Positions 3,552-30,887 of a stretch of 64,000 nt of DNA are shown here, piece after piece. Below the pieces are notes generated by a model. The model saw only the letters and a program-made list of their open reading frames with translations, did not search any database and was not told where the DNA came from. The position numbers and the translations under genes were made by a program. Location of the stretch: positions 124,001-188,000 of IMG/VR virus record IMGVR_UViG_3300017991_000001. The stretch is one strand, 5' to 3'. Position 1 is the first letter of the stretch. The number at the start of each line of letters is the position of its first letter.

Positions 3552-4364
3552 ATGCCCACAATCCATTTTCTTGCCGGGCTGCCCCGCAGCGGCTCCACGC
3601 TGCTGATGAACATCCTGGCCCAGAACCCGGACATCCATCCCACGACCACGTCCCCGCTTCCCGAGGCGCTGGTGCGCGCCCGGAACAGCTGGCAGGATAT
3701 CGGGGCGTACAGTGCCAACCCGGACCACCGGGCACGGGACGGAGCGCTCAAGGGGTTGCTGCAGGGGTATTACGCCCACGTCGAGGAACCCGTGGTGATC
3801 GACAAGCACCGCGGGTGGCCGTCCCACATCGAACTGCTCGAACACCTGACGCAGTGCGACGTCAAGATCATTTGCACGGTGCGCTGCATCGTGGACATCC
3901 TTTCGTCGATGGAGAAGCTGTACCGCGCCAACAAGGCGGTGCGACGCCCCGAGGGTGAGGGCCAGGCAGCCGGGCAGTACCTGTCGGTGAAGGGGCGCGC
4001 CAACGTGTGGATGGGCGAAGTCGGGGTGATCGGCTCGGCTTACCTGAACATGCAGGACGCCTGTGCGCGCGGGTACCGGGACCGCCTCCACTTCGTGGAA
4101 TACGGCAACCTGACGAAGTTCCCCGACAAAACCCTCAAGAAGGTCTACAAGTTTCTGGGGATGGAACCCTACGACAGCCATGACTTCGTGAACGTGGAGC
4201 AGACCACGCAGGAGAACGACTACTTCCACGGTTTCGAGGACCTGCACACGATCCGACCCACCGTGGCCCACCAGCACAGCGACGCGACGGAGGTGCTGGG
4301 AGAGGAACTTGTGGCCCTGTACAGCAAGCCCGGCGCCCAGTTCTGGCGTGCTCCGGGCTTCTAA
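3552..4364 (+). CDS. Sulfotransferase-family protein
   Basis: PAPS-binding loop GLPRSGSTLL, DKHRGW, VRCIVDILSS, LHFVEYGNLTKFP. Confidence 0.85.
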   Translation: MPTIHFLAGLPRSGSTLLMNILAQNPDIHPTTTSPLPEALVRARNSWQDIGAYSANPDHRARDGALKGLLQGYYAHVEEPVVIDKHRGWPSHIELLEHLTQCDVKIICTVRCIVDILSSMEKLYRANKAVRRPEGEGQAAGQYLSVKGRANVWMGEVGVIGSAYLNMQDACARGYRDRLHFVEYGNLTKFPDKTLKKVYKFLGMEPYDSHDFVNVEQTTQENDYFHGFEDLHTIRPTVAHQHSDATEVLGEELVALYSKPGAQFWRAPGF

Positions 4365-6684: not shown

Positions 6685-7557
6685 ATGGGTGAATTCGCGA
6701 AACGGGCCGCCGAGGTCCTGGAGCCGTGGGAGCTGGAGCTGGAGCGCCAGCAGAAGAAGCTCTACAAGAAGATCCCGTCCTCCAAGGAAGAGGCCACCAC
6801 TTCGGCGATCAACCGCATCAACGAGCTGCGCCAGAAGAGCTACATGGCCGGCTACCTGATGAGGCATCTGCGTAGCGAGGAAGAGGAAACCAAGCGCCTG
6901 CTGCCGGAGGACTCGGTGGGCGTGCCCGGCAGGGAGATCTCCCTGGCGCTCCCTGAGAAGAAGGCTGGTGCGCTGGACGCGTTGACGCGCCCGCTGCGCG
7001 AGACGGCCGAAGACCTCAAGATGCACGCCTCCCAACGCATCGACGAGGAGAAGGAACGGCTCACACGCACCACGTCCGATCCCGGCACGCTGCCCTGGTA
7101 CTACCCCATGATGGCGCTGACCGCCCCCAACGCCTTCGCCGAGGGGTTCCGCAAGGCGGAGAAGGACATCGACGCCGAGGAGCTGGCCCGCATCAACGAG
7201 CGGCTCGTCAAAGCCAAGGCCGAGTTCGAGAAGGCGCTCGAGGAGGAGTACAGCCAGTCGGGCAGCTTGAAGGTCAGCAGCGCCCGGCCTCAAAGCGCCG
7301 GCGAGATGATCGACGGGCTGGCGCAGATGCATGTCAAGTGCGCCGAGGGTGAGCTCAACCAGATCCTGGGCACCTACCTGGCGCTGGCCGCGCTGCTGGG
7401 TCAGGGCGCGCACATGACGGCCAAGGAATGGGCCGAGAAGCGCGACCCGAAGAGACAGAAGCTGAAACTCGTGCGCGAGGCCGTGCGCCAGCGCATGCGT
7501 TCGTACATGCCACCCATCCGGGTGGAGGCCGGGGAACCTGGACTGGCCATAAGCTGA
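6685..7557 (+). CDS. Helical putative virion protein
   Basis: RBS GAGGTG; AKRAA, EKKA, VKCA motifs; coiled-coil character. Confidence 0.6.
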   Translation: MGEFAKRAAEVLEPWELELERQQKKLYKKIPSSKEEATTSAINRINELRQKSYMAGYLMRHLRSEEEETKRLLPEDSVGVPGREISLALPEKKAGALDALTRPLRETAEDLKMHASQRIDEEKERLTRTTSDPGTLPWYYPMMALTAPNAFAEGFRKAEKDIDAEELARINERLVKAKAEFEKALEEEYSQSGSLKVSSARPQSAGEMIDGLAQMHVKCAEGELNQILGTYLALAALLGQGAHMTAKEWAEKRDPKRQKLKLVREAVRQRMRSYMPPIRVEAGEPGLAIS

Positions 7558-7571
7558 CACGGGGTCCTCAC

Positions 7572-10500
7572 ATGCCTGAAGCCCTTCTCAATGACACGCT
7601 GAGCGCGCCGGTCAAACCAAAACCGGCCGTCACGCATCGCACGTTCGACGACGTGGACACCATGCGCGGCTCCATCTTCGACGGGGTGCTCGACGCCGTG
7701 GCCAAGAAGTACCCGGTCGAGAACACCCGCTATCGCATGGAAGTGGCTGATCTGGGCTACGGCAAGGACAAGCCTTACTCCCTGGAAGACCAGAAAAAAG
7801 CGATCATGACGGGCCAGACGATGACCCGTCAGCTGTCCGGCACCTGGCGCCTGGTCGATAAGGAGTCGGGCAAGGTCGTCGATTCAAAGAAGGCCGTGAT
7901 CGCACACGTGCCCTATGTCACGCCTCGGGGCACCTTCATCTACCGCGGCAACGAGTACACCATCTCCAACCAGATGCGCCTCAAGCCCGGGGTCTACTCC
8001 CGCGTCAAGGACAACGGCATGATCGAGGCCCACTTCAACGTGGCGCCCGGCACCGGCCCGTCCTTCCGCATGTACATGGAGCCGGACACCGGCATCTTCC
8101 GCCTGGCCGTGGGCCAGTCGACGCTGAAGATGTACCCGATCCTGAAGGCCATGGGCGTGCCCGACCGCGAGATCGAGCAGATCTGGGGAAAGGAGCTCCT
8201 GCAGAAGAACACCGAGGCGGCCGACCCGCGCGCCGTCTCCCGCGCCTTCGCCAAGCTGGTGGCGACCCGCGCGGACCAGCCGGGCATCGACGCCGACCGG
8301 GAAGGGCTGGCCAAAGTCGCCCAGTTCACCCAGGTGGACAACGACCTGGTCGTGGGGCCTTCGCGGGTCCACGGCAACGGCTTGTACACGCAGCAGCCCG
8401 TCCCGGCCGGCACGCGCGTCACGCCGGCCTACATCCGCATCGGCATGACCGGCGACACCGAGGCCGACTTCGTGCGTTCCGGGCCGGCGCTGTGGGTCAA
8501 TCACCAGCCCGACGACATGGCCAACACGGTCACGGCCGTAGCACCCGACGGGCGCATGGCCAACCTGATCGCCACCCGCGACATCGAGCCGTGGGAGGAG
8601 ATCACCTGCGACTACGCCAAGAACCACGACACGCTGACGGACTGGGTCAAGCAGCTGTACGACATGGACGAGATGGAGGCCGAGAGGTCGATCTCCAAGA
8701 TCGCCATGTCGAAGACGGCGGCCAAGATCCCGACCGTGGCCGTGGACCTGGACGGCACGCTGGCCGAGATGTACGAGTCCTTCGATCCCAAGAAGATCCC
8801 CGACCCCCGCCCCGGCGCGCGCAAGGCCATGAAGAAGTTCCAGGACAAGGGCTACCGGGTCCTGATCCACACCGTGCGGGGCGACGACCAGCTGACCAAG
8901 GACTGGTTGCACAAGCACGACATCCCCTACGACTACGTCAACGAGAACCCGGACCAGCCCGACACTGCATCCGACAAGCTGATCGCCGACGCCTACGTGG
9001 ACGACCGCGGCGTGCAGGGTGCGCAGGCCTGGCACAAGATCGAGCAACAGGTCTCCGCCAAGCTGGAGAAGGAAGCCAAGATCGGTTTCAAGGACCAGGA
9101 GATGCGGTGGACGAAGTTGTGGTTCCACGGCACCGTGCGGGCCCAGCGCCAGGGCAACGACGGCAAACCGTGGGTCTATGTCCAGGTCCACAAGGGGCTT
9201 ATGGACGCTGCTCGGGACAGCCTCGCCAATGAAGGCGTGGACATCGAGAAGAACCCCAACGACCCGCACATCACGCTTCTGCGCTCCAGCGAAGCCCAGG
9301 AGCTGATCGACCGGCACGGCGAGGAGCAGTGGAAGGGCGCGGCCAAGGACGGCAAGTCCATACGCTTCGCGCTCAGGCGCATGATGTCCCTGATCCCGGA
9401 CGGGTGGGACGGCGTGGACCGGGTCTGGTTCATCGAGGTGGAGAGCCCGGACTTGAAGAAGTACCGGCGCGATCTGGGTTTTCCCGAGCTGCCCATCGGC
9501 GACAACGGCAACGAGCACCGCTTCCACATCACCTTTGCCATCCACCGCTCCAAGAACGAGCCCAAGCGCGCGGCGTACCTGCTTTCCGGTGCCGGCATCG
9601 GAATCGTGGAGCGCGCCTTTGAGAAGGCCGCCGGGGCCACCGACCAGGGCATCGAGCTCAACCAGGTCTTCGACCGCATGGAGCTGGACCCTGACGTGAC
9701 CAAGTCCACGGTCGGTGAGGGCTTCAAGAACGCCGGCATCCCGACGCTGCTCAGGGTCAGCCAGAAGCTCCTGAACATTTCAAAGGGGATGGAGGACACC
9801 GACGACCGGGACTCGCTGGCCTACCAGAAGCTGTACGGTCCCGAGGACTTCTTCACCGAGCGCGTGAACCGCGACGCCGGCCAGACCGGCCGGAAGCTGT
9901 TGTGGCGCGCCACGCTGCGGGGCAACCTGAAACACGTGCCTACGGGGGCGCTTTCCGGGCAAATGTTCGGCGTGCTGCTGAGAAGCGGCATGGGGATGAG
10001 TCTCGAAGAGACCAACCCCATGGACATCATGGACCAGAACCTCCGCGTGATCCGCCTGGGCGAGGGCGGCATTCCGTCGCTGGACTCGGTGCCGGAGGAG
10101 AGCCGAAACGTCCAGCCCAGCCACTTCGCCTACCTGGACCCGATCAGAAGCCCGGAGAGCGAGAAGATCGGCGTGGACTCGCGCGTGTCCCATCGCGTGA
10201 TGAAGGGTTCCGACGGGCAGTTCCACGCGCCCATGTTCAACCCGAAGACAGGCAAGGAGGAGATGGTCTCCGCGGCAAAGGCGGCCGAGTCGGTGGTGGC
10301 CTTTCCGGGCGAGCTGAACAAGAAGCGCGGCAAGGTCAGGGCCATGGTCAAGTCCAGGCAGGTCCAGTACGTGGACCGCAAGGACGTGGACTACGAGGTC
10401 GAAGACCCCAACCAGATGTTCACGCTCAGCTCCAACCTGGTTCCCCTGGTGTCGGGCATCAAGGGCGGGCGCCTGCTGATGGGCGCCAAGTACTTCACCC

Positions 10501-13500
10501 AGGCGCTGCCCCTGCGCGAGCGGGAGGCCCCGCTGGTCCGCAACCTGGAGAGGAGCGGCAAGTCCTTTGACGAGCTGTACGGGGACCGGGTGGGTGCCAT
10601 ACGCGCGCAGGCTCCGGGTGTGGTGACCTCGATGAACAAGAACGGCATCAAGGTCAAGTACGCCGACGGGACCACCAAGGAGCATGAGCTGTATCGCAAC
10701 TTCCCCTTCAACCGGAAGAGCCTGACCGGGGATTGCGAGGTGCTGATCAAGCGTAACGGCGAACTCCTTGTTACGCGACTGGACGCCTACGAATTCGAGC
10801 AGGGGGACCTGACGCTGTCGATCGACCCTGAAACGAAGTTGTCCGCATGGATGGAGGTAACTGGCTATACGCGTCACGAGTGTGACAAGCGCCTGTACCG
10901 GGTCAAAACGGATTCAGGCAGAGCCTTCACAATAACTGAGGATCACAGCTTGATGGTGATGGGCCCTGAAGGCGATCTCGTCCCCGCTTACCCAAGCGCT
11001 TGCGTCGTTGGGCACACGCGCATACCCGTGGCGCTGCCTCGTTTTGAAGGGTGTCGCGGATTTTTCGGCGAGGACAAGCTGGGAACGTTGACCGGCCTGT
11101 ACCTGGCGGAAGGACATATTCCTCAGAACCAGCCCAATCTCATCATCATAGCGGTTGCGCCGGAAGAGCGGGCAGACGAGGTAATGCGGCTGTTTCGCGA
11201 ACTTGGCTGCAAACCTTTCAGGAACGGCGGTTCCGTGTGCGCTACCGATGCTGATTTGAGCAAGTTTCTCATAAAGAACTGCGGACACCTTTCGCACGGC
11301 AAGTTTATCGGCCGACAGCTGATGAATGCCAACATGTCGTTCAAACAGGCTCTGTTACAAGGCTATTTGGCCGGCGACGGCAACTTGTGGGCGGACAGAA
11401 ACGGCACTGTTCAGCTCACGGCAGTGACCGTATCCAAACGTCTTCGCGACGATCTGGTCGTTCTCGCGGGCACTTTGGGAGTCTTCACGACGCTTTTCGA
11501 CGTACCCCGTGACAACGAGGCATGGCGTGACGGCTACGGGCTGCGCTTCCCGAACAAGGAATTGAAGCGGACGCGGTGGATGTTCTACGAGGACCGTCAA
11601 CGCCTGCTCGACGCGTTGGTTAGGGAGAACACGCGCGCGTCCAAGTTTGACGTGGTTCCGGTGCCACGGGAAGCGCGTAAAGCCTTGTATGGCGAGTTGG
11701 AAACTGTGCCGCATTTCGTCTACAAAACGGTTAACAAGGGCTACGTGGCGAAACACAGAGTGCGTACGGGGTCTGGTGTTTTTGGAAAGTGGGGCGCCTC
11801 CGACGTGTCCTGGGACCGGATCAAGTCGATTACGGAGGTGCCCAGCGAGGAATATGTTTATGACCTGTCCGTGGCGGCATCCGAGGCTTTTGCGGTAAAC
11901 GGCGGCGTCGTTGTCCACAACACGTTCATCCACAACACCCCGACCGTTAAGATCGGGGACCGGGTCCGCAAGGGGCAGTTGCTGGCCACCAGCAACTACA
12001 CGGACGACCAGGGCGCGCTGGCGCTGGGCACCAACCTGCGCACCGCCTACGTGCCCTACAAGGGCCTCAACTTCGAGGACGCCATTGTCATCTCCGAGTC
12101 GGCGGCCAAGCGGCTCTCCAGCGAGCACATGTACCAGCACACGCTCGACAAGGAGGACGACACGGTCACGGGGCGCAAGCAGTTCGTCTCGATCTACCCG
12201 ACGACCTTCAACCGCAAGCAGCTAGGCGCGCTGGACGAGCGCGGCGTGGCCAAGGTGGGCACCACCATCAAGTACGGCGACCCCGTGGTGCTGTCCATGC
12301 GCAAGAACCAACCCTCGGCCGTGCATCGGGGCCGCAAGCCCATGTACACCGACACCTCCATCACCTGGGATCACGAGTCCCCGGGCATGGTGACCGGCGT
12401 GGACGAGACGGACGACGGCGGCTTCAACGTGACGGTGAAGGCCTACATGCCGGCACAGGAGGGGGACAAGCTGGCCGGCCGCTACGGCGACAAGGGCGTG
12501 ATCTCCAAGGTCGTGCCCGACGACCAGATGATGCACGACCGGGACGGCAAGCCCTACGAGATCCTGCTCAACCCGTTGGGCATCATCACGCGCGGCAACC
12601 CCTCCCAGGTGTACGAGACGCTGCTGGGCAAGGTGGCCCGCAAGCGGGGCAAGCCCATTAGTGTGCCGGGCTTCATGGACGAGAGCATGGTGGACTACGT
12701 GCGGAAGGAGCTCAGCCGGGAGCGGATGAAGTCGCATGAGGACCTCTACGACCCGACCACCAACCGCAAGGTGCCGGACATCCTGACCGGGGACCGCTTC
12801 ATCTTCAAGCTGCACCACACCGCCGAGTCCAAGGGCAAGGGCCGCGACGTGGGCGCCTACACCTCCGAGGGCATCCCGGCCAAGGGCGGCGAGTTGGGCT
12901 CAAAGCGGGTCAGCAACATGGAGCAGAACGCCCTGCTGTCCCATGGCGCGACCGGCGTGCTGCGCGACGCCCAGGTGGTCAGGGGCCAGCGCAACGACGA
13001 CTTCTGGCGGGCCTTCAGGATGGGCTACACGCCCCCCTCGCCGAGCGTGCCCATGGTCTACGACAAGTTCCTCAACCACCTGCGCGGCGCCGGCATCAAC
13101 GTCAAGAAGAACGGCGACCGGACGCAGCTGCTGGCCATGACCGACAAGGACGTGGACGAGATGACCAGCGGGGAGATCACCGAGGCCAAGACGGTGGACT
13201 CCGACACGCTCAAGGAGATCGACGGTGGGCTGTTCGATCGCGGGCTCACCGGAGGGCACGGGGGCAGCCGCTGGAGCCATATAAAACTGGCCGAACCCAT
13301 GCCCAATCCCGTGATGGAAGAGCCCATTCGTCGCATGTTGGGCCTGACCAAGGTCAAGTTCGAGGAGGTCCTGCAGGGCAAGGAGGACATCGGCGGCGAG
13401 ACGGGCACCAAGGCCATCGGGGCGGCGCTGAAGCGCATCAACCTGGACGAGGCCATCGACAACGCCAAGCTGATCATCAAGGACGGCGCGAAGTCCAAGC

Positions 13501-14504
13501 GGGACAACGCGGTCAAGACGCTGGGCTACTACGAGACGCTCAAGAAGGCCGGGATGAAGCCCAGCGACCTGATGCTCTCCAAGGTGCCGGTGCTGCCGCC
13601 GTCCATGCGCCCGATCACCCAGTACCGGTCCATGCAGCTCTCGGCCGACCCGAACTTCCTGTACCGGGACCTGATCAACGCCAACACGGACCTCAAGGAG
13701 ATCTCGTCCGAGCTGGGCCGCAGGCACGGCGGCAGGGCGCGGTTGCGCACCTACCACGCCTTCAAGGCCGTGACCGGCCTGGGCGACCCCGTGCAGGCCA
13801 AGACCCAGGAGAAGCGGGTCAAGGGTCTCCTGGCCCACGTCTTCGGCTCCAGCCCGAAGTTCGGGATGTTCCAGCGCCGGGTGCTGGGCAGCCCCGTGGA
13901 CGTGGTGGGCCGGGCGGCGATCACGCCCAACCCGAGCCTGAGCATGGACCAGGTGGGCATCCCCGAGGACAAGGTCTGGACGATCTACCGGCCCTTCGTG
14001 GTCCGGCGCCTGATCCGCCGCGGCATGCCGGCGATGGACGCGGCCAAGGCTGCGGCCAACCGCACGGAGGTGGCGGCCAACGCGCTGCAGGAGGAGATTT
14101 CCACGCGGCCCGTTCTGATCAACCGCGCGCCCACGCTGCACCGCTACGGGTTCATGGCGGCCTGGCCGGTGCTGACCAAGGGCAAGACCCTGCAGGTCTC
14201 CCCGACCACGGTGGGCGGCTTCAACGCGGACTTCGACGGCGACGCGATGAACTACCACGTGCCGGTGACCGACGAGGCCGTCGCTGACGCGGTGGACAAG
14301 ATGCTGCCCAGCAAGAACCTGAAGTCCGCGAGGTTCTTCAAGACCCATTACGTGCCCGTCAACGAGTTCCTGATGGGCCTGTACCTGGCCAGTACGGCCA
14401 AGAGCGACAAGCCGTTACGGGTGTTCCGGGACAAGAAGGACGTGCTGGCTGCCTACCAGCGCGGGGACATCGGCCTGGGAGACCGTGTTTCCATAAGGAG
14501 CTGA
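7572..14504 (+). CDS. Phage multi-subunit RNA polymerase: beta fused to the N-terminal half of beta', with SET/HAD/2H insertion and an intein
   Basis: beta motifs GTFIYRGNEYTISNQMRLKPGVYS, GLNFEDAIVISE, GDKLAGRYGDKG, LNPLGIITRGN; beta' motifs PVLPPSMRP, NRAPTLHR and catalytic FNADFDGDAM; ATG 7572 follows the previous stop. Confidence 0.95.
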   Translation: MPEALLNDTLSAPVKPKPAVTHRTFDDVDTMRGSIFDGVLDAVAKKYPVENTRYRMEVADLGYGKDKPYSLEDQKKAIMTGQTMTRQLSGTWRLVDKESGKVVDSKKAVIAHVPYVTPRGTFIYRGNEYTISNQMRLKPGVYSRVKDNGMIEAHFNVAPGTGPSFRMYMEPDTGIFRLAVGQSTLKMYPILKAMGVPDREIEQIWGKELLQKNTEAADPRAVSRAFAKLVATRADQPGIDADREGLAKVAQFTQVDNDLVVGPSRVHGNGLYTQQPVPAGTRVTPAYIRIGMTGDTEADFVRSGPALWVNHQPDDMANTVTAVAPDGRMANLIATRDIEPWEEITCDYAKNHDTLTDWVKQLYDMDEMEAERSISKIAMSKTAAKIPTVAVDLDGTLAEMYESFDPKKIPDPRPGARKAMKKFQDKGYRVLIHTVRGDDQLTKDWLHKHDIPYDYVNENPDQPDTASDKLIADAYVDDRGVQGAQAWHKIEQQVSAKLEKEAKIGFKDQEMRWTKLWFHGTVRAQRQGNDGKPWVYVQVHKGLMDAARDSLANEGVDIEKNPNDPHITLLRSSEAQELIDRHGEEQWKGAAKDGKSIRFALRRMMSLIPDGWDGVDRVWFIEVESPDLKKYRRDLGFPELPIGDNGNEHRFHITFAIHRSKNEPKRAAYLLSGAGIGIVERAFEKAAGATDQGIELNQVFDRMELDPDVTKSTVGEGFKNAGIPTLLRVSQKLLNISKGMEDTDDRDSLAYQKLYGPEDFFTERVNRDAGQTGRKLLWRATLRGNLKHVPTGALSGQMFGVLLRSGMGMSLEETNPMDIMDQNLRVIRLGEGGIPSLDSVPEESRNVQPSHFAYLDPIRSPESEKIGVDSRVSHRVMKGSDGQFHAPMFNPKTGKEEMVSAAKAAESVVAFPGELNKKRGKVRAMVKSRQVQYVDRKDVDYEVEDPNQMFTLSSNLVPLVSGIKGGRLLMGAKYFTQALPLREREAPLVRNLERSGKSFDELYGDRVGAIRAQAPGVVTSMNKNGIKVKYADGTTKEHELYRNFPFNRKSLTGDCEVLIKRNGELLVTRLDAYEFEQGDLTLSIDPETKLSAWMEVTGYTRHECDKRLYRVKTDSGRAFTITEDHSLMVMGPEGDLVPAYPSACVVGHTRIPVALPRFEGCRGFFGEDKLGTLTGLYLAEGHIPQNQPNLIIIAVAPEERADEVMRLFRELGCKPFRNGGSVCATDADLSKFLIKNCGHLSHGKFIGRQLMNANMSFKQALLQGYLAGDGNLWADRNGTVQLTAVTVSKRLRDDLVVLAGTLGVFTTLFDVPRDNEAWRDGYGLRFPNKELKRTRWMFYEDRQRLLDALVRENTRASKFDVVPVPREARKALYGELETVPHFVYKTVNKGYVAKHRVRTGSGVFGKWGASDVSWDRIKSITEVPSEEYVYDLSVAASEAFAVNGGVVVHNTFIHNTPTVKIGDRVRKGQLLATSNYTDDQGALALGTNLRTAYVPYKGLNFEDAIVISESAAKRLSSEHMYQHTLDKEDDTVTGRKQFVSIYPTTFNRKQLGALDERGVAKVGTTIKYGDPVVLSMRKNQPSAVHRGRKPMYTDTSITWDHESPGMVTGVDETDDGGFNVTVKAYMPAQEGDKLAGRYGDKGVISKVVPDDQMMHDRDGKPYEILLNPLGIITRGNPSQVYETLLGKVARKRGKPISVPGFMDESMVDYVRKELSRERMKSHEDLYDPTTNRKVPDILTGDRFIFKLHHTAESKGKGRDVGAYTSEGIPAKGGELGSKRVSNMEQNALLSHGATGVLRDAQVVRGQRNDDFWRAFRMGYTPPSPSVPMVYDKFLNHLRGAGINVKKNGDRTQLLAMTDKDVDEMTSGEITEAKTVDSDTLKEIDGGLFDRGLTGGHGGSRWSHIKLAEPMPNPVMEEPIRRMLGLTKVKFEEVLQGKEDIGGETGTKAIGAALKRINLDEAIDNAKLIIKDGAKSKRDNAVKTLGYYETLKKAGMKPSDLMLSKVPVLPPSMRPITQYRSMQLSADPNFLYRDLINANTDLKEISSELGRRHGGRARLRTYHAFKAVTGLGDPVQAKTQEKRVKGLLAHVFGSSPKFGMFQRRVLGSPVDVVGRAAITPNPSLSMDQVGIPEDKVWTIYRPFVVRRLIRRGMPAMDAAKAAANRTEVAANALQEEISTRPVLINRAPTLHRYGFMAAWPVLTKGKTLQVSPTTVGGFNADFDGDAMNYHVPVTDEAVADAVDKMLPSKNLKSARFFKTHYVPVNEFLMGLYLASTAKSDKPLRVFRDKKDVLAAYQRGDIGLGDRVSIRS
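8346..8615 (+). other. SET domain inserted in RNAP beta
   Basis: PSRVHGNGLYT (GxG), WVNHQPDDMAN (NH motif), IATRDIEPWEEITCDY (EExxxDY). Confidence 0.85.
8727..9053 (+). other. HAD-superfamily phosphatase domain inserted in RNAP beta
   Basis: Motif I VAVDLDGTL, motif II IHTVR, YVNENP, motifs III/IV KLIADAYVDDR. Confidence 0.85.
9078..9551 (+). other. 2H phosphoesterase domain inserted in RNAP beta
   Basis: Two HxT motifs, PHITLL (9267) and FHITFA (9525), with intervening VWFIEVESPDLKKYRRDLG. Confidence 0.8.
10719..11921 (+). mobile_element. Intein (401 aa) with LAGLIDADG homing endonuclease in RNAP beta
   Basis: Starts SLTGDCEVLI, ends YVYDLSVAASEAFAVNGGVVVHN before Thr; LGTLTGLYLAEGH and LLQGYLAGDGN motifs; shifted codon usage; removal restores FPFNRK-TFIHNTPTVKIGDRVRKGQLLA. 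Confidence 0.93.
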
Positions 14505-14529
14505 CAAACAACGTATCGGACCCTATAAT
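14501..14529 (+). promoter_or_regulatory. Sigma70-like promoter
   Basis: CTGACA-N17-TATAAT overlapping the RNAP stop codon, 30 nt before ORF 14560. Confidence 0.65.
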
Positions 14530-14559
14530 CCGCTGCGTTGATGCACAGGGAGAACTATC

Positions 14560-15186
14560 ATGTCCGCGTCCAAAGGTGTTGCCAAGAAGGTGCTGCCCAA
14601 GCCGAAAGGCAAGGAGGGGAAGATTCTCGTGACCACGCCCAAGCCCGACAAGGTTTCCGTACAGGCGGTCAAGACGTCCGCGCTGCGCCGAGCAGAGATC
14701 CTCAGCCTGATCACCAAGGAAGGTTTCGGCTTTGCCACGAAGGAGGGTAGCGCTGCCAAGGGGCTCGTGAACGCTGCCGGCAAGCTGCGCTCCGGGGCTC
14801 GAAAGGGCCTCAAGTCTTACGGCAAACTGGTCGGTAGCAAGACGAAGCCCGGAATTGCTACAGACAAGGAACGGAAGTTGTTCAACAAGGCCAAGAAGAA
14901 GGGCGTCAAGAGCAAGAAAGGCGCCAAGGCTCTCGATAAGTTCAAGCGCGAGGCTTCCAAGAAGACCGTGAAGCACTTGAACCGTTCGCAGAAATTCTTC
15001 GGAAAGCTGAAGGACGACAAAGGCAATCGCATTAAACTCAGCTCCGCTCAGCTGTTGGGCCACTTCCTGAAAAGGGCGCTGACCAAGCAGGGTTCGGAGC
15101 AGATCATCAAGCAGGCTTCGGACCGCGAACGGGCGGCCCGTGTGCTTTCAGCCGTCCACAAGGCGGCACGCAGCTATGGACGCTAA
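14560..15186 (+). CDS. Very Lys-rich basic protein, possibly DNA-binding/internal head protein
   Basis: RBS GGGAG; dense Lys content; IIKQA motif. Confidence 0.65.
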   Translation: MSASKGVAKKVLPKPKGKEGKILVTTPKPDKVSVQAVKTSALRRAEILSLITKEGFGFATKEGSAAKGLVNAAGKLRSGARKGLKSYGKLVGSKTKPGIATDKERKLFNKAKKKGVKSKKGAKALDKFKREASKKTVKHLNRSQKFFGKLKDDKGNRIKLSSAQLLGHFLKRALTKQGSEQIIKQASDRERAARVLSAVHKAARSYGR

Positions 15187-15388
15187 GGCGTACCTCATCA
15201 AGCAGGCGCTGGGGATGAGTGGCCTCCAGATGCAGATGGAGATGCCCTTTTCACCACCCCGGCCCGTGGCGCACATGGACACGCTGGAGGACCGCCGTAC
15301 CCGGGAAAAGATGCTGGCGGACCTGCCGCCATCCAGACGTGAGGGGATCTTAAGGGCCATACAGGCCAGAATGAGGGCCAGACGATGA
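15176..15388 (+). CDS. Small protein with AYLIKQA leader
   Basis: Begins MDAKAYLIKQALG; overlaps both neighbours. Confidence 0.6.
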   Translation: MDAKAYLIKQALGMSGLQMQMEMPFSPPRPVAHMDTLEDRRTREKMLADLPPSRREGILRAIQARMRARR

Positions 15389-16167
15389 ACAGACTCAACC
15401 CGCAACTGATCAAGCTGGCACGCGGCGCGATCCGCAAGGCGGAGAAGACGGCTGCCAAGAAGGAAGCCTTCGTGCCCATGTCACCCGCCGGTGCGGCTCC
15501 CGCACCTCCGGGTGCGCCCATGCCGCCTCCACCGGCAGGCGCGCCAGCGGCCCCCATGCCGCCCGATCCCATGATGGCCGGCGCCATGCCGGCTGACCCC
15601 ATGGCTGCAGGTGGGGCACCGCCGGCTGAAGGCGCGCCCATGGACCCGGCGGCTGCCGGTGCCGGCGGCGAGACCATGACGGTTGCGCTGCCCGACCTGA
15701 TCCAACTCTTCACCATGATCGCCCAGCAGGGCGGCGCAGGCGGAGCGCCCGCTCCCGCGCCCGCCGAAGGCGGCGGTGGCGAAGGCGGCGCCGAGCCCGA
15801 GAAGAAGCCCAGCGCGGCGGCGGGCAAGGACGCCAAGATCGACATGATCCTGTCCAAGCTGGACCAGCTGATCGGGGCGCTGGGCATGGCCGACATGATG
15901 GCGCCCGCCGAGGGCGGGGCAGCCATGCCTCCCGCAGAGACGGGGATGGAAGGCGAAAACGCCCTGGCTCCCGCCGAAGGCGGCATGGCTCCCGAAGCAC
16001 CCATCCCGGCGATCGATGCCGGCGGCGCGGCACCGCCCCCGCCCACGGGTGGCATGATGGTGGCTGCCGCGGAGGGCGAGAAGAAGGCATCCGGCAACGG
16101 CAACGTATCCAGGGCGAAGATGCTCAGCCGCATTTGCAGCAACCTGAGGAGTGGCCAGCGACGCTGA
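15385..16167 (+). CDS. Pro/Ala/Met-rich low-complexity putative head protein
   Basis: MNRLNPQLIKLAR, EKTAAKKEA, EKKAS motifs. Confidence 0.65.
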   Translation: MNRLNPQLIKLARGAIRKAEKTAAKKEAFVPMSPAGAAPAPPGAPMPPPPAGAPAAPMPPDPMMAGAMPADPMAAGGAPPAEGAPMDPAAAGAGGETMTVALPDLIQLFTMIAQQGGAGGAPAPAPAEGGGGEGGAEPEKKPSAAAGKDAKIDMILSKLDQLIGALGMADMMAPAEGGAAMPPAETGMEGENALAPAEGGMAPEAPIPAIDAGGAAPPPPTGGMMVAAAEGEKKASGNGNVSRAKMLSRICSNLRSGQRR

Positions 16168-16415
16168 TGAACGTGCGTGTGCAGGGCGAGGGCTTCGAGC
16201 CCGTGCAGGTTTTGGACAATGTCCAGTCCGTGGTCATTCTGGACGACCACGGGCAGCCGGTCATCGCCGTGCAGCGCACGAAGGAGAATCAGATCCTTTC
16301 CATCAAAGCCGGGGACCCCCATTTCGACAAGACCTTGGAGGCGATGGGCATCGGGCTGAACGCCCGGGTGGTCAGTGGGCATTTTCCGAAAGGGGTACCA
16401 AGTGATCCGTCCTGA
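16167..16415 (+). CDS. Small hypothetical protein
   Basis: TGATG coupling to the upstream gene; MNVRVQGEGFEP... Confidence 0.55.
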   Translation: MNVRVQGEGFEPVQVLDNVQSVVILDDHGQPVIAVQRTKENQILSIKAGDPHFDKTLEAMGIGLNARVVSGHFPKGVPSDPS

Positions 16416-18252
16416 TTATGTCCCTCCCCTCCTGCCCGGCGTGGGGCCCCTGTCTTTTGAGAAGGCGGCGGTTGCCCCCTTGGTGGCGGCTGCCCTGCCC
16501 ACGGTCGGTAGAGTGGCGGGAGGGTGGCTTTTGCGGCGAGGGGGAGCAGCACTGCTTCGGCGGTTGGGGCAGCGAGTTATCCCTGCGCTGCGCAGGTTTT
16601 TTGGAAGAGGTACTTCAGCGGCACGTTCCGCTCTGCGTGCTGACATTACCCCCAGGAAAGCTTTTGAACGCATACCAGCACAAGTAAAGTTGCCGAAGCG
16701 TGATCCCATCACAGGCAAGAAAGCACCTCGTCACATGCGTGGTTGGCAGGATCGCTCCATGATTACAGAAGGTGTGGCACCTGGAACGCGTCCGCCTGCG
16801 GCGCCTGCCGCAGCGTCAGGGAAGCCGGGATTGGCTACACGTTTCGTTGACTGGGCCACGGGCCGCAAAAATGTGGACCCTTCCACGGGCAAAACACCTG
16901 GCGTGATGGGTCAGGCCATGAACGTGGGGGGCAAGGTATTGAACACCGCGCTCTACGGGAGCATAGGGGCTGACCTTTTGGGTTCACTGGGTTCGTTGTG
17001 GAAAGGCGGTTCGCCACCTGTAGCGTCCGGGTCTGCGGGACATCAAATGTGGAACTATCCCAAGACGGCCGAGCGTAGAGCTGCCTTCGAGGAGGGTGTG
17101 GACCGGTTTTGCAAGGAAGCCGACTTCGACGACGAGGACAAGCAAGCATTATACACGTTGATCGAAACAGCCGCTGAGTTGGAAAAGCGGGGCGTGGACA
17201 CTTGGGAGCTCCTTAAAAAGCCGGTTGTGGACCCTTTGGGCACGTGGATAGGCGTGGGGCATACTCTGCTGTCCGGGCTGGGAGGAATAGGTTCGGATAA
17301 GGGTATCTTAGGAGCAATGGAACACACGGGCAAGAAGTATATGAGAAGTGGACCAAATCCGTTCGAGAAAGGAATTTCAAGTATCTTTTGGGGCGACCCT
17401 GGCGCACGTGCTGAAAGTGCTGCCAAGAAAAATCAAACCCCCGAGCAGCGGGAACAGGCTTCTCGCAGGGATCAGGTTCGCGGCTTGAGCGAAGAGATCA
17501 TGAAGGACGAGGGGCTACGCGAAGACATTGAGAGGCGAGGGTTCAGGGAACTAAGGCGCTGGGCCAAATCCAGGAACGTGCCGTTGGGCGTGGCACGCGA
17601 CGCGCTGAAGGGTACGACTTCGGTGCATCCTCAACTCGCTGGTGCGCTAAAACAACCTACGAAGCCCGGTGTTACGCCCGGTTCACGGCTCATTGGTGTA
17701 CGAAGCGGAGCTAGGCAAACACAAGGTGGCTCCGTCCCACTCAGGCTGGGTCCAATGCCTGCGGCGAGGCCTCCGGCTTCAAATACACCTGGAGCGGCGC
17801 CCGCACCAACCGAACCCGCCACGGCGCCGGCGGCAAGTACATCCCCTTCTGCCGCCGAGGCGGCTTCATCGTTCAAGAACCAGGTGAACGCCCGGAACCC
17901 CGGCGCGAAGTGGCTCAACCTGAGCAAGGGCGAAGGTGCGATCCTGCCCGTGGATCAGTCGGCCGGCCCGAACCTGCAGCGCAGGGCCCAGACAAACGCC
18001 TTCTTCAACATGCAGCCGCAGCAGGGCAACGTGACCATGGCCCAGCGTGGCGGCACGGGCGTGGAGACGCTCACCCCGCGTACGCAGTCAAGCAACATGC
18101 CCTTCGCGGAGGGTACGGGTTCGCCGTCCACGGGCATGACCGACTTCAGCGACTGGATGAAGACCACCTACGGCGACACCAGTAAGATGACCGACCCCAG
18201 CAACATGATCTCTACGGGTGTGGACATGAAGACGCCCAAGCCGAACGTTTAG
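16402..18252 (+). CDS. Large mosaic putative virion protein
   Basis: Likely GTG start 16402 (track start 16375); FEKAA, PKTA, CKEA motifs; atypical codon usage over about 16450-17850. Confidence 0.6.
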   Translation: MIRPDYVPPLLPGVGPLSFEKAAVAPLVAAALPTVGRVAGGWLLRRGGAALLRRLGQRVIPALRRFFGRGTSAARSALRADITPRKAFERIPAQVKLPKRDPITGKKAPRHMRGWQDRSMITEGVAPGTRPPAAPAAASGKPGLATRFVDWATGRKNVDPSTGKTPGVMGQAMNVGGKVLNTALYGSIGADLLGSLGSLWKGGSPPVASGSAGHQMWNYPKTAERRAAFEEGVDRFCKEADFDDEDKQALYTLIETAAELEKRGVDTWELLKKPVVDPLGTWIGVGHTLLSGLGGIGSDKGILGAMEHTGKKYMRSGPNPFEKGISSIFWGDPGARAESAAKKNQTPEQREQASRRDQVRGLSEEIMKDEGLREDIERRGFRELRRWAKSRNVPLGVARDALKGTTSVHPQLAGALKQPTKPGVTPGSRLIGVRSGARQTQGGSVPLRLGPMPAARPPASNTPGAAPAPTEPATAPAASTSPSAAEAASSFKNQVNARNPGAKWLNLSKGEGAILPVDQSAGPNLQRRAQTNAFFNMQPQQGNVTMAQRGGTGVETLTPRTQSSNMPFAEGTGSPSTGMTDFSDWMKTTYGDTSKMTDPSNMISTGVDMKTPKPNV

Positions 18253-18261
18253 GGGTTGTGA

Positions 18262-20100
18262 ATGGAAACGACGGTTGGACAGCTCCTGCTGAACGAGGCC
18301 TTGCCCGAGGACATGCGCGACTACCGCCGTGTCATCGACAAGAAGTCCCTCGCGCCGCTGTTCACCGAACTGGCCGAGAAGCACCCCGACCACTACGCCG
18401 AGATCAACCAGCGCCTCCACACCCTGGCCGCCGACGCGGTGACGGGGCACGGCGGCGTGACCAGCCTCACGCTCGACTCGCTGCGCACGCCGCTGGGCAT
18501 CGAGCGCGCCCGCAAGGAACTGCAAAAGAAGATCGACAAGGTGCTGGACGGACCCGGCACCCAGGAACAGAAGAATGAAAGAATCGTGGGACTGATCTCC
18601 GACGCGCTGGAGCCCGTCACGCAGGAGAATTACAAAGAGAACCTGGCGGCCGACAACCCGCTGGCCGTGCAGGTTTCCTCCGGCAGCCGGGGCAACCCCG
18701 CCGGCCTGCGCTCCCTGACAGCAGGGGATCTGCTTTTCACGGACCACAAGGACCGCCCGATCCCGGTGCCGGTCCTTACGTCTTTCTCGGAAGGGTTGGA
18801 CCCCGTGCAGTACTGGGCCGGCGCGTACACGGCCCGCAAGGGCACCATCGCCACCAAGTTTGCCACCCCCAAGTCGGGGTTCCTGGGCAAGCAGCTCGCG
18901 GCGGCCTCCCACCGCCTGGTGGTCACCGAAAAGGATTGCGGCACGCCCAACGGCCTCGTGGTGGACGCTCACGACCCGGACAACGAGGGGGCCGTGCTGG
19001 CTTCGGACGCTGGCGCGTTCAAACGCGGCGAGGTGCTGGACCCCAATAACATGCGCAAGCTGAAGGACCAGATCGTGGTGCGTTCGCCCATGACCTGCCA
19101 GGCGGAGAACGGCATCTGCCAGCAGTGCGCCGGGGTGCGCGAGCGAGGCGGCTTCCCGCCTATCGGCGACAACGTCGGGATGGCCGCCGCACACGCCATC
19201 TCCGAACCCATCGGGCAGGGTCAGCTGAACGTCAAACACGGCGGCGGGAAGCTGAAAAAGCGCGACGAGGCCAAGACGGGCATCGACCTGATCAACCAAC
19301 TCGTGCAGGTTCCCAAGACTTTTGCCGGGGCTGCTGCGATATCAACCGTTGACGGTCGAGTCGAGCGGGTGGAGAATGCTCCACAAGGCGGCCAGTACAT
19401 TCGGATTGCGGGTACCGAACATTGGGTGCCGGCAGGCGAGGACCTGGTTGTCAAGCGTGGGGACAAGGTGGAGGCCGGGGACGTCCTTTCCAGCGGCATC
19501 CCGAACCCGGCCGAGATCACGCGCTTCAAGGGGATCGGGGAGGGCCGGCGGTACTTCATGGAGATGTTCCGCAAGACGCTGGAGGAGAACCGCTTCAAGG
19601 CGCACCGGCGCAACGTGGAACTGCTCTCCAGGGGCCTGATCAACCACGTCAGGGTGACGGATCTGGACGGACCGGCGGACACCCTGCCCGACGACGTGGC
19701 CGAGTACGACGACATCGTGCGCGGATATCAGGCCCGTTATGGCTCCAAAACGGTTGCCCCGAAGCGTGCCCTTGGGTTATACCTGGAACGTCCCGCACTG
19801 CACTATTCGATCGGGACGCGCGTCACGCCCCGCGTGGCCAAGAGTTTGCAGGACCACGGCGTAGAAAATGTGCTGGCCCATGCCGACGAACCAAGCTTCG
19901 TACCGGAGATGACACGGGCGATGGAAACCCTCTCACACTCCAGCGACTGGATGGTGCGATTGGGCGGTTTCCATTTGAAAAAGTCCTTAATGGGGGCGTT
20001 GCACCGTGGACGAGAGTCCAAGGAGCACGGCACCTCATTCATCCCTCCACTCGCGAAGGGCGTCGAGTTCGGCAAGCCAAAAGGCGACGTCGGATACTGA
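18262..20100 (+). CDS. RNA polymerase beta' C-terminal half
   Basis: SGSRGN, SFSEGL, bridge helix ARKGTIATKFATPKSGFLGKQL, Zn site KDCGT...RSPMTCQAENGICQQC, trigger loop AAAHAISEPIGQGQLNVKHGG. Confidence 0.93.
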   Translation: METTVGQLLLNEALPEDMRDYRRVIDKKSLAPLFTELAEKHPDHYAEINQRLHTLAADAVTGHGGVTSLTLDSLRTPLGIERARKELQKKIDKVLDGPGTQEQKNERIVGLISDALEPVTQENYKENLAADNPLAVQVSSGSRGNPAGLRSLTAGDLLFTDHKDRPIPVPVLTSFSEGLDPVQYWAGAYTARKGTIATKFATPKSGFLGKQLAAASHRLVVTEKDCGTPNGLVVDAHDPDNEGAVLASDAGAFKRGEVLDPNNMRKLKDQIVVRSPMTCQAENGICQQCAGVRERGGFPPIGDNVGMAAAHAISEPIGQGQLNVKHGGGKLKKRDEAKTGIDLINQLVQVPKTFAGAAAISTVDGRVERVENAPQGGQYIRIAGTEHWVPAGEDLVVKRGDKVEAGDVLSSGIPNPAEITRFKGIGEGRRYFMEMFRKTLEENRFKAHRRNVELLSRGLINHVRVTDLDGPADTLPDDVAEYDDIVRGYQARYGSKTVAPKRALGLYLERPALHYSIGTRVTPRVAKSLQDHGVENVLAHADEPSFVPEMTRAMETLSHSSDWMVRLGGFHLKKSLMGALHRGRESKEHGTSFIPPLAKGVEFGKPKGDVGY

Positions 20101-25464: not shown

Positions 25465-26616
25465 ATGGAGCTGTCCCAAGAACTCGCCGTGACCTGTGTG
25501 GCCGTCAAGGAGGCTTCCGAGAAGGAGGCCATGCCTGGCGTGCCCGCCGCGCTGCCCATGAGCAATGCCCTGGCAGCCCCCGCCAAGAGCATGGCCGGCC
25601 AGGCAACGCAGATGGCCAACCAGCGCGTGGCGCAGGGGCAGGCCACCGAGCGTCAGCAGATCAACGATAAGGAACAACAGGGGCAAGTCCAGACGGCCAG
25701 CCCCATGACCAAGAACATTGCCCCCATCCGTCCCGCGAACATCGGCCAGCCCCTCATACGGCAGGGGTATCAGCCACCCGTGGTGCGCAATACCTGGTCA
25801 CCGCCGGTGCCCGTCAAGGCGGCAGCCGACCCCGACCTGACCCAGCTGCGCGCGAAGTTCGAGTCCATGGAAGCCAGGGAACGCCTGCTGCGTCGGCACG
25901 CGCAGAAGTGGGAGGAGTTGTCGGCTGCACGCGCGGCGCGCGAGGAGCCCAGCGCCGTGTCCACGGCGTTACAGCGCATGGCTCCGGTACCGCACACGAT
26001 GGGCGAGGCGGCCGTGCGTGCTCCGCTGGCGGCCCTTTCCGGGTACGGCGGATATAGAATGGGCGCCAAGTTGGAGCCGGCCGACGTGGAGGAACTGCAG
26101 CGCGTGCTGGGCGCTTCCCGCGCCAAGGGCGAGGGGCTGCGCCCGATCGAGCGCAACCTGTCCGACCTGGTCGGTGAGCAACGGGCAAAGAGACTGGCCA
26201 AGGCGTTGCGCCAGGCGGACCCGACCGTGACCGCGCAAGCGCTCAGGGAGGCGGACATCACCGCGCCTGGTGAAGACGTCGCCAAGCTGCGTAAGCGTAT
26301 GGGGAAGGCGGTGAAAGGTTCCAAGGGCAAGGCGTTGCGCGGCCTAGCCGGGCGCGCCCGCATCAAGTCCGAGATTTCCAACTTGTTTCGCCAGGGGCAG
26401 AGCCAGCCGCTTGTACCCAAGATGAGACCCTGGCGCATCGGCGGGGCGCTGGGCGGCCTGGCGCTGGGCGGACTGCTGTCCGGCATCCCGTACGCGGCAC
26501 ACGCTCTGTACCGCAAGGGCGAGGGCGGCGAGGCGGCCTACCGCGCCGCGCAGCGGGCGAAGGAACTTACCGAGGAGGCTGAGCGCGTCTCCGCTGAAAG
26601 GGAGGCGCTGCTGTGA
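25465..26616 (+). CDS. Putative virion protein with C-terminal Gly-zipper helix
   Basis: VKEASEKEA, VKAAA; IGGALGGLALGGLLSGIPY. Confidence 0.6.
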   Translation: MELSQELAVTCVAVKEASEKEAMPGVPAALPMSNALAAPAKSMAGQATQMANQRVAQGQATERQQINDKEQQGQVQTASPMTKNIAPIRPANIGQPLIRQGYQPPVVRNTWSPPVPVKAAADPDLTQLRAKFESMEARERLLRRHAQKWEELSAARAAREEPSAVSTALQRMAPVPHTMGEAAVRAPLAALSGYGGYRMGAKLEPADVEELQRVLGASRAKGEGLRPIERNLSDLVGEQRAKRLAKALRQADPTVTAQALREADITAPGEDVAKLRKRMGKAVKGSKGKALRGLAGRARIKSEISNLFRQGQSQPLVPKMRPWRIGGALGGLALGGLLSGIPYAAHALYRKGEGGEAAYRAAQRAKELTEEAERVSAEREALL

Positions 26617-28073
26617 TCAAGGTTATCCGTTCCGACAGCTACGACTTCGACATGCCCGCCGCGTCGCTGGTGCAGGTGTGGTCGCGCGGCATTGACCGCC
26701 ACTGGATCACCAAGCGCGCGGCGGTGCTCAACGACGTCGTGCGGGGCATTCAGCCCGAGAAGGGCTTCCAGTACATCCACCTGATCACCATGGGGGCGCA
26801 GGAGGCATACGGCCCCAACCGCAACGGGGACGGCTTCAACGAGAAGCGGGGCACCTTCGAGCTCCCGTACCCCAAGGACGGCGTGCCCGTCTACCACATG
26901 AGCGGTGGCCTGACCGAGCGGCACAACACCTTCACCAAGAACGCCCACGTCTTCGAGCACCACAAGAACAAGGACCCCAAGAAGGCCATCGGTTCGGTTC
27001 ACGCGGACGCCTACAACCCCGAGATGAAGCGGGGCGAGCTGATCGCGAAGGTGCCCGAGAACGACAACTGGCTGCCCCATCTGGAGAAGCTGGCCAACGG
27101 GGAAGATATTCCCTTCAGCATGGCGTGCAAAGTCCCCTATGACGTGTGCACGATCTGCGGGAACAAGGCCAAGTCCCGGGCGGAATACTGCAAGCACGCC
27201 TCCGACCACCTGACCGAGATCCTGAAGGAAGGCCACCAGTCCTTCGTGATCAACGACCAACCCAACTTCTTCGACATCTCGCGCGTCTTCCGGCCGGCCG
27301 ACCGCATCGCCTGGTCGCTCAGGAAAGTGGCCTCGGCGGGGGTCGTTTCGATCAAGTCGGGAGCCCAGTTGGCCGAGGAAGAGGGGCTGATGTTACCGGA
27401 GCGCTTCTGGGACGCGGACAGCCCCGATGCCTCGGCCAAGATCGCCGCCGCGAAGAAGCTGGCCGAGATTGAGAAACTAGTTGACGGATCGGCAAGGTCT
27501 GTGGACAATGCCGCCCGTTTGAAGGGGTTGGCTTGCGGGTGTCCATCCGAAAACCTTCCCCATGAAGCCATGGAGATCCTTCAGAAAGCGCAGCTCGGAC
27601 AGGCGCTACACGGACTGGCGGACGCCAAGATTTGCCTTTCCCTGGAGGACTTCATCAAGCTGGTATCGGGGTCAGAAGCGTGCGACTCCGCAGCCGGCGA
27701 CATCCCTGCCGCAATGGGGGTGCTGCCTGGTGTGTTCAGCCGACTCCTCCGTAATGGGGGAATTGAGGACTGCGCGACGGACTCGGCGTACGACCCGTCC
27801 CGCTCGGCGATACCCAGGTGCATCCGGGAGGCTTTAGCTCCACTGGCAGACGGACACTCGATGTCGGCCGGTCCAGCTACGCGGCGCATGCAAATCACCA
27901 TCATTCGCGCGACGCCCAAACCTTCCAAAGCACCCGTGAAACTCGCTTCCACCTCAAAGTCTGCTGAGCGCTTGGCCAGGGAGTACGCCAAGTACCAGCT
28001 TTCGTTCGTTGCAGCAGCGGGAAGGGACGACGAACTGGTTCACGGGCTGACGGTCCTGCGCAACCACACTTGA
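26613..28073 (+). CDS. Prohead (capsid maturation) protease with Zn-finger-like motif
   Basis: Upstream of scaffold and capsid genes; GPNRNGDGF, FEHHKNKD...IGSV (His), IPFSMACKVPYD (Ser), CTICGN...YCKH. Confidence 0.75.
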   Translation: MIKVIRSDSYDFDMPAASLVQVWSRGIDRHWITKRAAVLNDVVRGIQPEKGFQYIHLITMGAQEAYGPNRNGDGFNEKRGTFELPYPKDGVPVYHMSGGLTERHNTFTKNAHVFEHHKNKDPKKAIGSVHADAYNPEMKRGELIAKVPENDNWLPHLEKLANGEDIPFSMACKVPYDVCTICGNKAKSRAEYCKHASDHLTEILKEGHQSFVINDQPNFFDISRVFRPADRIAWSLRKVASAGVVSIKSGAQLAEEEGLMLPERFWDADSPDASAKIAAAKKLAEIEKLVDGSARSVDNAARLKGLACGCPSENLPHEAMEILQKAQLGQALHGLADAKICLSLEDFIKLVSGSEACDSAAGDIPAAMGVLPGVFSRLLRNGGIEDCATDSAYDPSRSAIPRCIREALAPLADGHSMSAGPATRRMQITIIRATPKPSKAPVKLASTSKSAERLAREYAKYQLSFVAAAGRDDELVHGLTVLRNHT

Positions 28074-30821: not shown

Positions 30822-30887
30822 TTGGTGCGGGCAGCTGCCAAGAGCGCATCCCGCGAGACGTAAGGCCAATTGATAAGGAGACAGGCC

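Follow-up and report, generated by a model that had tools for sequence, protein, structure and literature searches.

We analysed a 64,000-nucleotide stretch of DNA (the window; positions 124,001 to 188,000 of the IMG/VR virus record IMGVR_UViG_3300017991_000001, which is 211,084 bp long and has direct terminal repeats), in which a gene of a bacteriophage multisubunit RNA polymerase (RNAP) carries a SET domain. The open reading frame (ORF) in question spans positions 7428 to 14504 of the plus strand and its translation of 2358 residues (P0001) gives the residue numbering used below. The true start is most likely the ATG at 7572 (M49 of the ORF), because the ORF before it stops at 7557 and P0002, the copy of the protein in the database, is 2310 residues long. 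Pfam searches revealed the domains Rpb2_2, Rpb2_3 and Rpb2_6 followed by Rpb1_1 and Rpb1_2, and the protein is therefore a beta subunit fused to the N-terminal half of beta', with the catalytic motif NADFDGD at 14223-14243. A scan of the whole record found one beta only, and no other SET domain. The nearest cultured phages were Vibrio phages D69, D181 and D148 and Salmonella phage Arash, with about 30% identity, and a megablast of the RNAP gene against 50,697 phage records gave no match. The features of the polymerase are the following:

7572-14504, plus strand: RNAP beta fused to the N-terminal half of beta', 2310 aa (from the Pfam domains, the length of P0002 and the architecture of Arash gp206)
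8337-8660, plus strand: SET domain, P0001 residues 304-411, a beta-strand core with a C-terminal flanking helix
8370-8387, plus strand: SET motif I, HGNGLY (H315-G-N-G318-L-Y), with the GxG of S-adenosylmethionine (SAM) binding
8493-8525, plus strand: SET motif III, WVNHQPDDMAN, with the NH pair and the distal Asn
8595-8615, plus strand: SET motif IV, EEITCDY, whose terminal Tyr is the conserved catalytic Tyr
8661-8735, plus strand: helical segment linking SET to HAD, of low conservation (25% identity to P0004)
8736-9107, plus strand: capless HAD-type phosphatase module, P0001 residues 437-560, with DxDGT (VAVDLDGTLAE) and a distal DD (YVDDRG)
9108-9647, plus strand: 2H phosphoesterase module of the 2H-SAK ("Swiss Army Knife") type, P0001 residues 561-740
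18262-20100, plus strand: C-terminal half of beta' (Rpb1_5), a separate gene that completes the polymerase, 29% identity to Arash gp216

An earlier note, made from the letters of the sequence, had placed a SET-domain methyltransferase in this RNAP gene at positions 8346-8615 (VVGPSRVHGNGLY ... PAYIRIG ... WVNHQPDDMAN ... EEITCDY, in the frame of the polymerase ORF). The excised segment scored 28.4 bits (E 2.3e-6) against Pfam SET (PF00856), exceeding the curated cut-off of 22.4; the score was 24.4 bits in the genome scan and 21.9 bits, slightly below the cut-off, within the entire 2358-aa protein. A profile of five RNAP-embedded copies matched PDB structures of the MLL4, MLL3 and MLL1 SETs (E 1.7e-8 to 1e-6), and its alignment to MLL4 set NH on the NH of NHS..PN and EEITxDY on EELTYDY. 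According to the note, failure to predict a SET fold would refute it; when residues 292-436 were modelled by AlphaFold2 from an alignment of 19 sequences, that fold was obtained, with a mean pLDDT of 89.9 and a pTM of 0.83. In a Foldseek search of the PDB with the model, the chlorovirus protein vSET was the best match and all the top 50 were SET or PR domains (probability 1.00), and VIA-align returned Z scores of 10.3 for EZH2, 9.9 for MLL1 and 9.8 for vSET over 82-99 residues. SET was likewise found in 99 of the 100 nearest clusters of the ESM Atlas, the top ones being phage proteins of 119-141 residues, and among predicted viral structures (BFVD) the best matches were again SET proteins, encoded by giant viruses or by uncultured tailed phages ("uncultured Caudovirales"). 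Since all these lines of evidence agree, residues 304-411 of the polymerase can be assigned to the SET superfamily with little doubt, and the RNAP domains around them bear out its placement in a phage RNAP gene. The folded domain, about 110 residues in size, slightly exceeds 8346-8615, reaching about 8337-8660 with its C-terminal flanking helix, and contained neither pre-SET nor post-SET zinc modules.

An exhaustive HMMER scan of 1.84 billion representatives returned 19 matches only, none beyond E 3e-7 or 38% identity, so that its identity is below 40% to anything among those 1.8 billion sequences, and no PHROGs or PADLOC family was found for the segment. It is a divergent member of a phage-borne SET clade. 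A "SET domain" mentioned in a crassvirus paper proved irrelevant, as it refers to "C2-set" immunoglobulin domains.

The motifs were accurately described from the start (GxG, NH and EEITCDY, with NHQPDDMAN for the usual NHSCxPN): the NH motif is one residue longer in spacing and has no Cys. Among the 19 homologues both Gly of S-x-x-H-G-x-G were invariant, its Ser was kept throughout or almost so, and the His was nearly invariant; N358-H359 was invariant and the distal N366 nearly so; and in E390-E-I-T-C-D-Y396 both E391 and Y396 were invariant. The motifs were preserved even in RNAP-embedded copies sharing just 25-38% identity with the window copy. In characterised SET enzymes the conserved columns correspond to residues that contact SAM or line the lysine channel. 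For the window copy compared with P0004, the nonsynonymous divergence (dN) was 0.20 for SET, 0.19 for 2H and 0.12-0.15 for the polymerase core; synonymous divergence (dS) was saturated and dN values alone are given, with no dN/dS ratio. A SET value close to that of 2H and fairly near that of the core, with dS saturated, indicates purifying selection on the domain. Judged from its conserved residues, the module is likely to have methyltransferase activity.

The type of activity can be anticipated to some extent. At the Phe/Tyr-switch position, two residues before the catalytic Tyr, there is a Cys here and an Ala, Gly or Leu in the other RNAP-embedded copies. The meaning of this position is established SET enzymology, and because Cys is small and non-aromatic, the channel is predicted to permit the transfer of more than one methyl group. 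The post-SET Cys/Zn cluster was absent: the NH motif lacks Cys, the tail is not rich in it, and a well-predicted helix stands in place of the cluster. The domain is therefore outside the SUV39, SET1, SET2 and EZ subfamilies; the cluster marks these subfamilies, not the SET superfamily, and vSET, SET8 and SET7/9, which have a helical C-flank, are active without it.

Three modules form a single block in the beta lobe: the SET comes first, the capless HAD phosphatase second and the 2H phosphoesterase third. The flanks of the block align to bacterial beta until about residue 224 and resume at about 331 of PDB 8x6f chain C, and hence the block splits the lobe, in the segment that we take to be the region where E. 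coli has SI1. Arash gp206 aligns to P0002 residues 38-253 and again from 681 on, with nothing between, and the relatives that carry only 2H lack P0002 residues 242-497 in the multiple alignment. The HAD module matched Pfam LNS2, HAD_PNKP and Hydrolase, PHROG 1238 and 415, and PDB 2obb. The 2H module scored 32.6 bits against Pfam 2H-SAK (cut-off 27), matched LigT_PEase as well, and has its two HxT motifs at 9267-9281 (HITLL) and 9525-9539 (HITFA). The catalytic motifs are thus intact in all three modules.

As a lineage-specific insertion, the SET could instead be a structural or docking domain devoid of methyltransferase activity, an explanation that we find quite improbable. Lineage-specific inserts of the bacterial beta lobe are usually non-catalytic, NHQPDDMAN is atypical, and no post-SET module accompanies it. 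PAP7, of the plastid polymerase PEP, has no known substrate, and stabilisation of the polymerase core has been proposed for it (PMC11561172). A pure scaffold, however, would not be expected to keep SAM-binding and catalytic residues invariant across copies of 25-38% identity, and the adjoining HAD and 2H modules keep their catalytic motifs too. Nor does the missing zinc cluster argue for inactivity, given vSET, SET7/9 and SET8.

A search with the insertion as query found about 25 metagenomic fusions of beta with the N-terminal half of beta' (beta-beta'N). At the insertion site nearly all of them have 2H, both catalytic His-Ile pairs being invariant in 16 relatives, and about eight have HAD. 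SET was present in six: the window protein, P0003, P0004, P0006, P0012 and, from the exhaustive search, P0035. The combinations observed were SET+HAD+2H, SET+2H, SET+DUF5661+2H, HAD+2H, HAD+DUF5661+2H and 2H alone; the order was fixed, with SET always first, and DUF5661 also occurred in genes next to the polymerase in some relatives. The simplest history is that 2H was inserted in the family ancestor after the split from Arash-like phages, and that gain and loss of modules followed. Because the modules vary independently among relatives, the pattern argues that they also act independently, not as one obligatory pathway.

This independence bears on the idea that SET, HAD and 2H act jointly on a non-protein substrate, such as nascent RNA ends or a nucleotide signal. 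SET does recur beside phosphoesterases: HAD and 2H here, LigD-PE in protein P0036 and a weak DHH-like domain in locus L020. SET+2H without HAD and HAD+2H without SET nevertheless occur in relatives, and the beta lobe is on the downstream-DNA side of RNAP, not at the RNA exit. We know of no SET-fold enzyme that methylates RNA or nucleotides, and consider a joint action of this kind most improbable.

The modules seem to belong to a wider pool. The closest relatives of the HAD module (45-57% identity) are internal modules of very large proteins of the "polyvalent" kind (see below), in which the partner domains are ART-PolyVal; Portal_Mu and InPase; NUDIX, InPase and 2H-SAK; LigD 3'-phosphoesterase; or SNF2 helicase. 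The second-best relative of the SET lies in P0036 (L004 1662-5417), a LigD-PE+SET+SNF2 helicase protein. Further related SETs in IMG/VR stood alone as small proteins, or lay in a protein with 1889 residues or more (L019 2582-8248) and in proteins of about 750 residues with a weak DHH-like N-terminal domain (L020 2444-4675); the contexts of P0036 and P0049 were too short to inform. From its occurrence in the P0036, L019 and L020 proteins, SET is a recurrent module of large multi-domain phage proteins, and in the metagenomes of tailed phages the small SET proteins form clusters of considerable size. A tree of the 19 SET sequences gave no resolution of its deep branches, and a single origin of the RNAP-embedded SETs was neither established nor excluded. 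Between the window and P0006 the SET is 26% identical, as against 56-58% for HAD and 2H, which could reflect faster divergence or replacement of the SET. Two "joints" at 8761-8917, in sequencing-run contigs aligned to 7900-9900, that might have been deletions were rejected, being short matches of HAD motifs of other organisms.

The position of the polymerase genes would fit a virion protein. They sit in the head or structural module, in a gene order common to the window and Arash: the product of 26613-28073 has 41% identity over 224 aa to the Arash structural protein gp222, and a capsid gene lies farther on:

30870-31835, plus strand: homologue of the major capsid protein, 31% identity to Arash gp226 over 321 aa (E 5e-33)

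The synteny of polymerase and structural genes was retained in the relatives. In the mass spectrometry of purified Arash virions no protein exceeded the spectral count of beta-beta'N (3516 spectra, 128 unique peptides), and the piece with the C-terminal half of beta' (beta'C) ranked near the top as well (PMC10585845). By analogy, the polymerase of the window is likely packaged in the virion.

These data lead to the interpretation that we tentatively prefer among those considered: a lysine methyltransferase delivered with the virion RNAP and acting early on host proteins near the polymerase. The packaged polymerase would enter the cell with the genome and start early transcription, as in Arash, and the lobe insertion would bring along three independent enzymes that work like the effector cassette of a "polyvalent" protein. 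The SET would use host SAM to methylate lysines of proteins that approach the polymerase lobe on the template. The likeliest targets would be host DNA-bound, transcription or defence proteins at the onset of infection, and less plausible ones the polymerase of the phage itself or the Lys-rich protein encoded right after it (see below). HAD and 2H would separately process 2',3'-cyclic or 3'-phosphate RNA ends, or degrade nucleotide signals, a role that has been proposed for the 2H modules of polyvalent proteins (PMC5512222). The earlier note had suggested that the enzyme could methylate host proteins on entry; this idea gained indirect support from the Arash virion proteome and from the kinship of the HAD module with modules of injected polyvalent proteins. 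Virion delivery together with action on host proteins is plausible, if not quite an even prospect.

Several points weigh against this interpretation. The packaging was seen for a relative only, with a polymerase of about 30% identity that lacks the insertion, and the authors of the Arash study cautioned that abundant enzymes may contaminate or co-purify with the particles (PMC10585845). The SET is dispensable for the polymerase itself, as about six of 25 family members have it. A structural role has been discussed for PAP7, the other case of a SET attached to a bacterial-type polymerase (PMC11561172). Finally, the AlphaFold2 model of residues 1-770 (mean pLDDT 57.5, pTM 0.27) was unusable for placing the modules relative to the DNA.

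A more specific version of the preferred interpretation is that the moving virion-delivered polymerase writes methyl-lysine on DNA-bound host proteins, either nucleoid-associated or defence proteins; we regard it as unlikely. It would make the fusion a bacterial-virus counterpart of the co-transcriptional histone methylation by Set1 and Set2 tethered to RNA polymerase II, built here into the catalytic subunit. The related SET of P0036, fused to an SNF2 DNA translocase, would agree with this logic of a methyltransferase carried by a DNA motor.

An active SET might also work on the phage's own proteins, i.e., the polymerase, virion or internal proteins, or the product of the ORF that comes after the fusion gene:

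14560-15186, plus strand: Lys-rich ORF, 208 aa, 20.7% Lys, directly following the RNAP gene

The prokaryotic and viral SETs with known substrates mostly modify Lys-rich DNA-binding proteins (chlamydial Hc1 and Hc2, archaeal MC1, histones), and the composition and position of ORF 14560 would suit such a role. A fused enzyme, moreover, has its own polypeptide and its complex partners at the highest local concentration, and one Lys in the linker after the SET is aligned in all five RNAP-embedded copies. A Lys-rich ORF, however, lies at the same position in the SET-less relatives L008 and L009, so that there is no co-variation with the SET, and ORF 14560 could not be placed in any DNA-binding family. 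As conservation is lowest in the linker (25% identity), the aligned Lys may be there by chance. Action on the phage's own proteins is in our view possible but doubtful, and the same holds for its suggested purposes, namely adjustment of transcription or protection of lysines against modification by the host. Two particular substrates put forward in the earlier note did not find support: ORF 14560, because of the Lys-rich ORF in SET-less relatives, and the Lys of K-x-A sites, on which no finding bears.

A small, fast-evolving protein of 13-21% Lys always followed the polymerase gene in the window and in L006 to L009 (L006 15428-15898, L007 10346-10750, L008 13815-14534, L009 15037-15636). The one of L006 carries DUF5661, which in other relatives was inside the polymerase insertion or in an upstream gene. 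For ORF 14560 no recognisable family or fold was found.

Among known SET proteins, vSET (A612L) of Paramecium bursaria chlorella virus 1 is the closest in design, being likewise a minimal core (about 100-120 residues) that has the same motifs. It comes from a eukaryotic virus and methylates histone H3K27 as a dimer. vSET and the small SETs of giant viruses and tailed phages are free-standing, whereas the SET of the window is an internal insertion in a polymerase subunit. Its nearest functional analogue, likewise a physical part of a bacterial-type multisubunit RNAP, is PAP7/pTAC14, a SET-fold subunit of the plastid enzyme whose active-site residues are conserved and whose substrate is not established (PMC11561172). 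PAP7, however, is a separate, nucleus-encoded, Rubisco-LSMT-like subunit that has an additional C-terminal, substrate-binding lobe and is docked on beta'' and omega near the secondary channel (PMC11561172), while the SET of the window is an insert of about 110 residues in the beta lobe with no LSMT C-lobe. The two are of independent origins.

The comparable lobe site of E. coli, with SI1/beta-i4, differs in content: the cellular inserts are non-catalytic and beta-rich, and here there are three catalytic domains, among them one that modifies proteins. Arash gp206 (1525 aa) and gp216 and the polymerases of Vibrio phages D69, D181 and D148 show the same split into beta-beta'N and beta'C, with 28-33% identity in the core, and their genes also lie among portal, structural and capsid genes; they have neither a lobe insertion (SET, HAD or 2H) nor an intein. 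There is one precedent of an enzyme joined to a phage RNAP subunit: in the AR9/PBS1-like jumbo phages of Bacillus an HD phosphohydrolase is fused to the C-terminal piece of RNAP beta (PMC7824862); that fusion is terminal, not internal, and adds a phosphohydrolase, not a methyltransferase.

The polyvalent proteins described by Iyer, Burroughs, Anand, de Souza and Aravind in 2017, which were proposed to be packaged and injected so as to counter host defence at an early stage (PMC5512222), likewise bring unrelated enzymatic effectors together in a single polypeptide, one that probably travels in the particle and reaches the cell with the DNA. 2H phosphoesterase is listed there as a module, and SET is not mentioned in the text of the paper (PMC5512222). 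Their carriers are MuF, portal, ArdC or similar domains; here this role falls to the catalytic subunit of a multisubunit RNAP. A Pfam scan found no polyvalent hub domain (MuF, ArdC-N, zincin-like MPTase, ART and others) in the RNAP protein, and such domains were confined to other proteins that have HAD or 2H modules in common with it. The RNAP fusion would thus work like a polyvalent protein and is not a typical member of the class. It combines three things each known by itself: a SET methyltransferase, a lineage-specific polymerase insertion and a polyvalent effector cassette. The searchable literature gave no report of a SET in a phage polymerase, nor of a function of SET lysine methylation in phage infection.

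The association ties the SET to a defined machine, a multisubunit RNAP that is probably injected, and so narrows where and when the enzyme would act. It also presents the beta lobe of this polymerase family as a docking site that swaps modules of the polyvalent pool (2H, HAD, DUF5661 and SET), and would extend the polyvalent-protein concept to multisubunit virion polymerases. It further offers an independent parallel to the unexplained PAP7 SET subunit of the plastid polymerase. If the targets were host nucleoid or defence proteins, protein methylation would represent a new type of phage counter-defence or host take-over.

The segment itself was recovered repeatedly. Identical DNA was found in several sediment and seawater sequencing runs of different studies: in run X3 one contig spans the whole 7900-9900 region without a difference, and the SET is covered by equally identical contigs in X6 and X7. 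A second IMG/VR contig carries the identical segment, and the contigs of four runs over 7900-9900 had no variants inside the SET.

The beta part of the fusion contains one more element, which is outside the SET finding:

10719-11921, plus strand: intein of 401 residues with a LAGLIDADG homing endonuclease (Pfam Intein_splicing, LAGLIDADG_3)

Its borders are FNRK|SLTGDCEV...VVHN|TFIH (Ser1 ... Asn, with Thr at +1); it was precisely missing from P0003, P0015, P0018 and Arash gp206, and intein-like matches occurred elsewhere in the polymerases of some relatives. For the N-terminal beta part (7428-8300) the best solved matches were cyanobacterial beta structures (8syi, 8h3v and 8gzg, E 3e-11 to 2e-9), with proteobacterial ones ranking behind them. 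A sigma-70 region 2, which Arash has, was not found in the genome, nor was any HU-type protein, and there was no tRNA within the 64-kb window.

The majority of the ORFs neighbouring the RNAP gene had no PHROG or Pfam family. Between the genes for beta-beta'N and beta'C (14505-18261, plus strand) there are four ORFs, of 208, 260, about 75 and 625 aa; their order is kept in the relatives, none has a Pfam or PHROG family, and they may be candidate polymerase subunits or factors. Upstream of the polymerase, the plus-strand ORF 3552-4364 belongs to the sulfotransferase family (Sulfotransfer_3, E 9e-17), unusual in a phage, and is conserved a few genes upstream of the polymerase in L006 and L008. 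Just before the window, an ORF of about 515 aa (G000:C1:122895-123227; L026) showed a weak match to ATP-dependent ligases. Its counterpart in L006, the first gene there, has a LigD 3'-phosphoesterase and a faint ligase domain, and this ligase-like ORF could be a sealing partner for the end-healing HAD and 2H modules.

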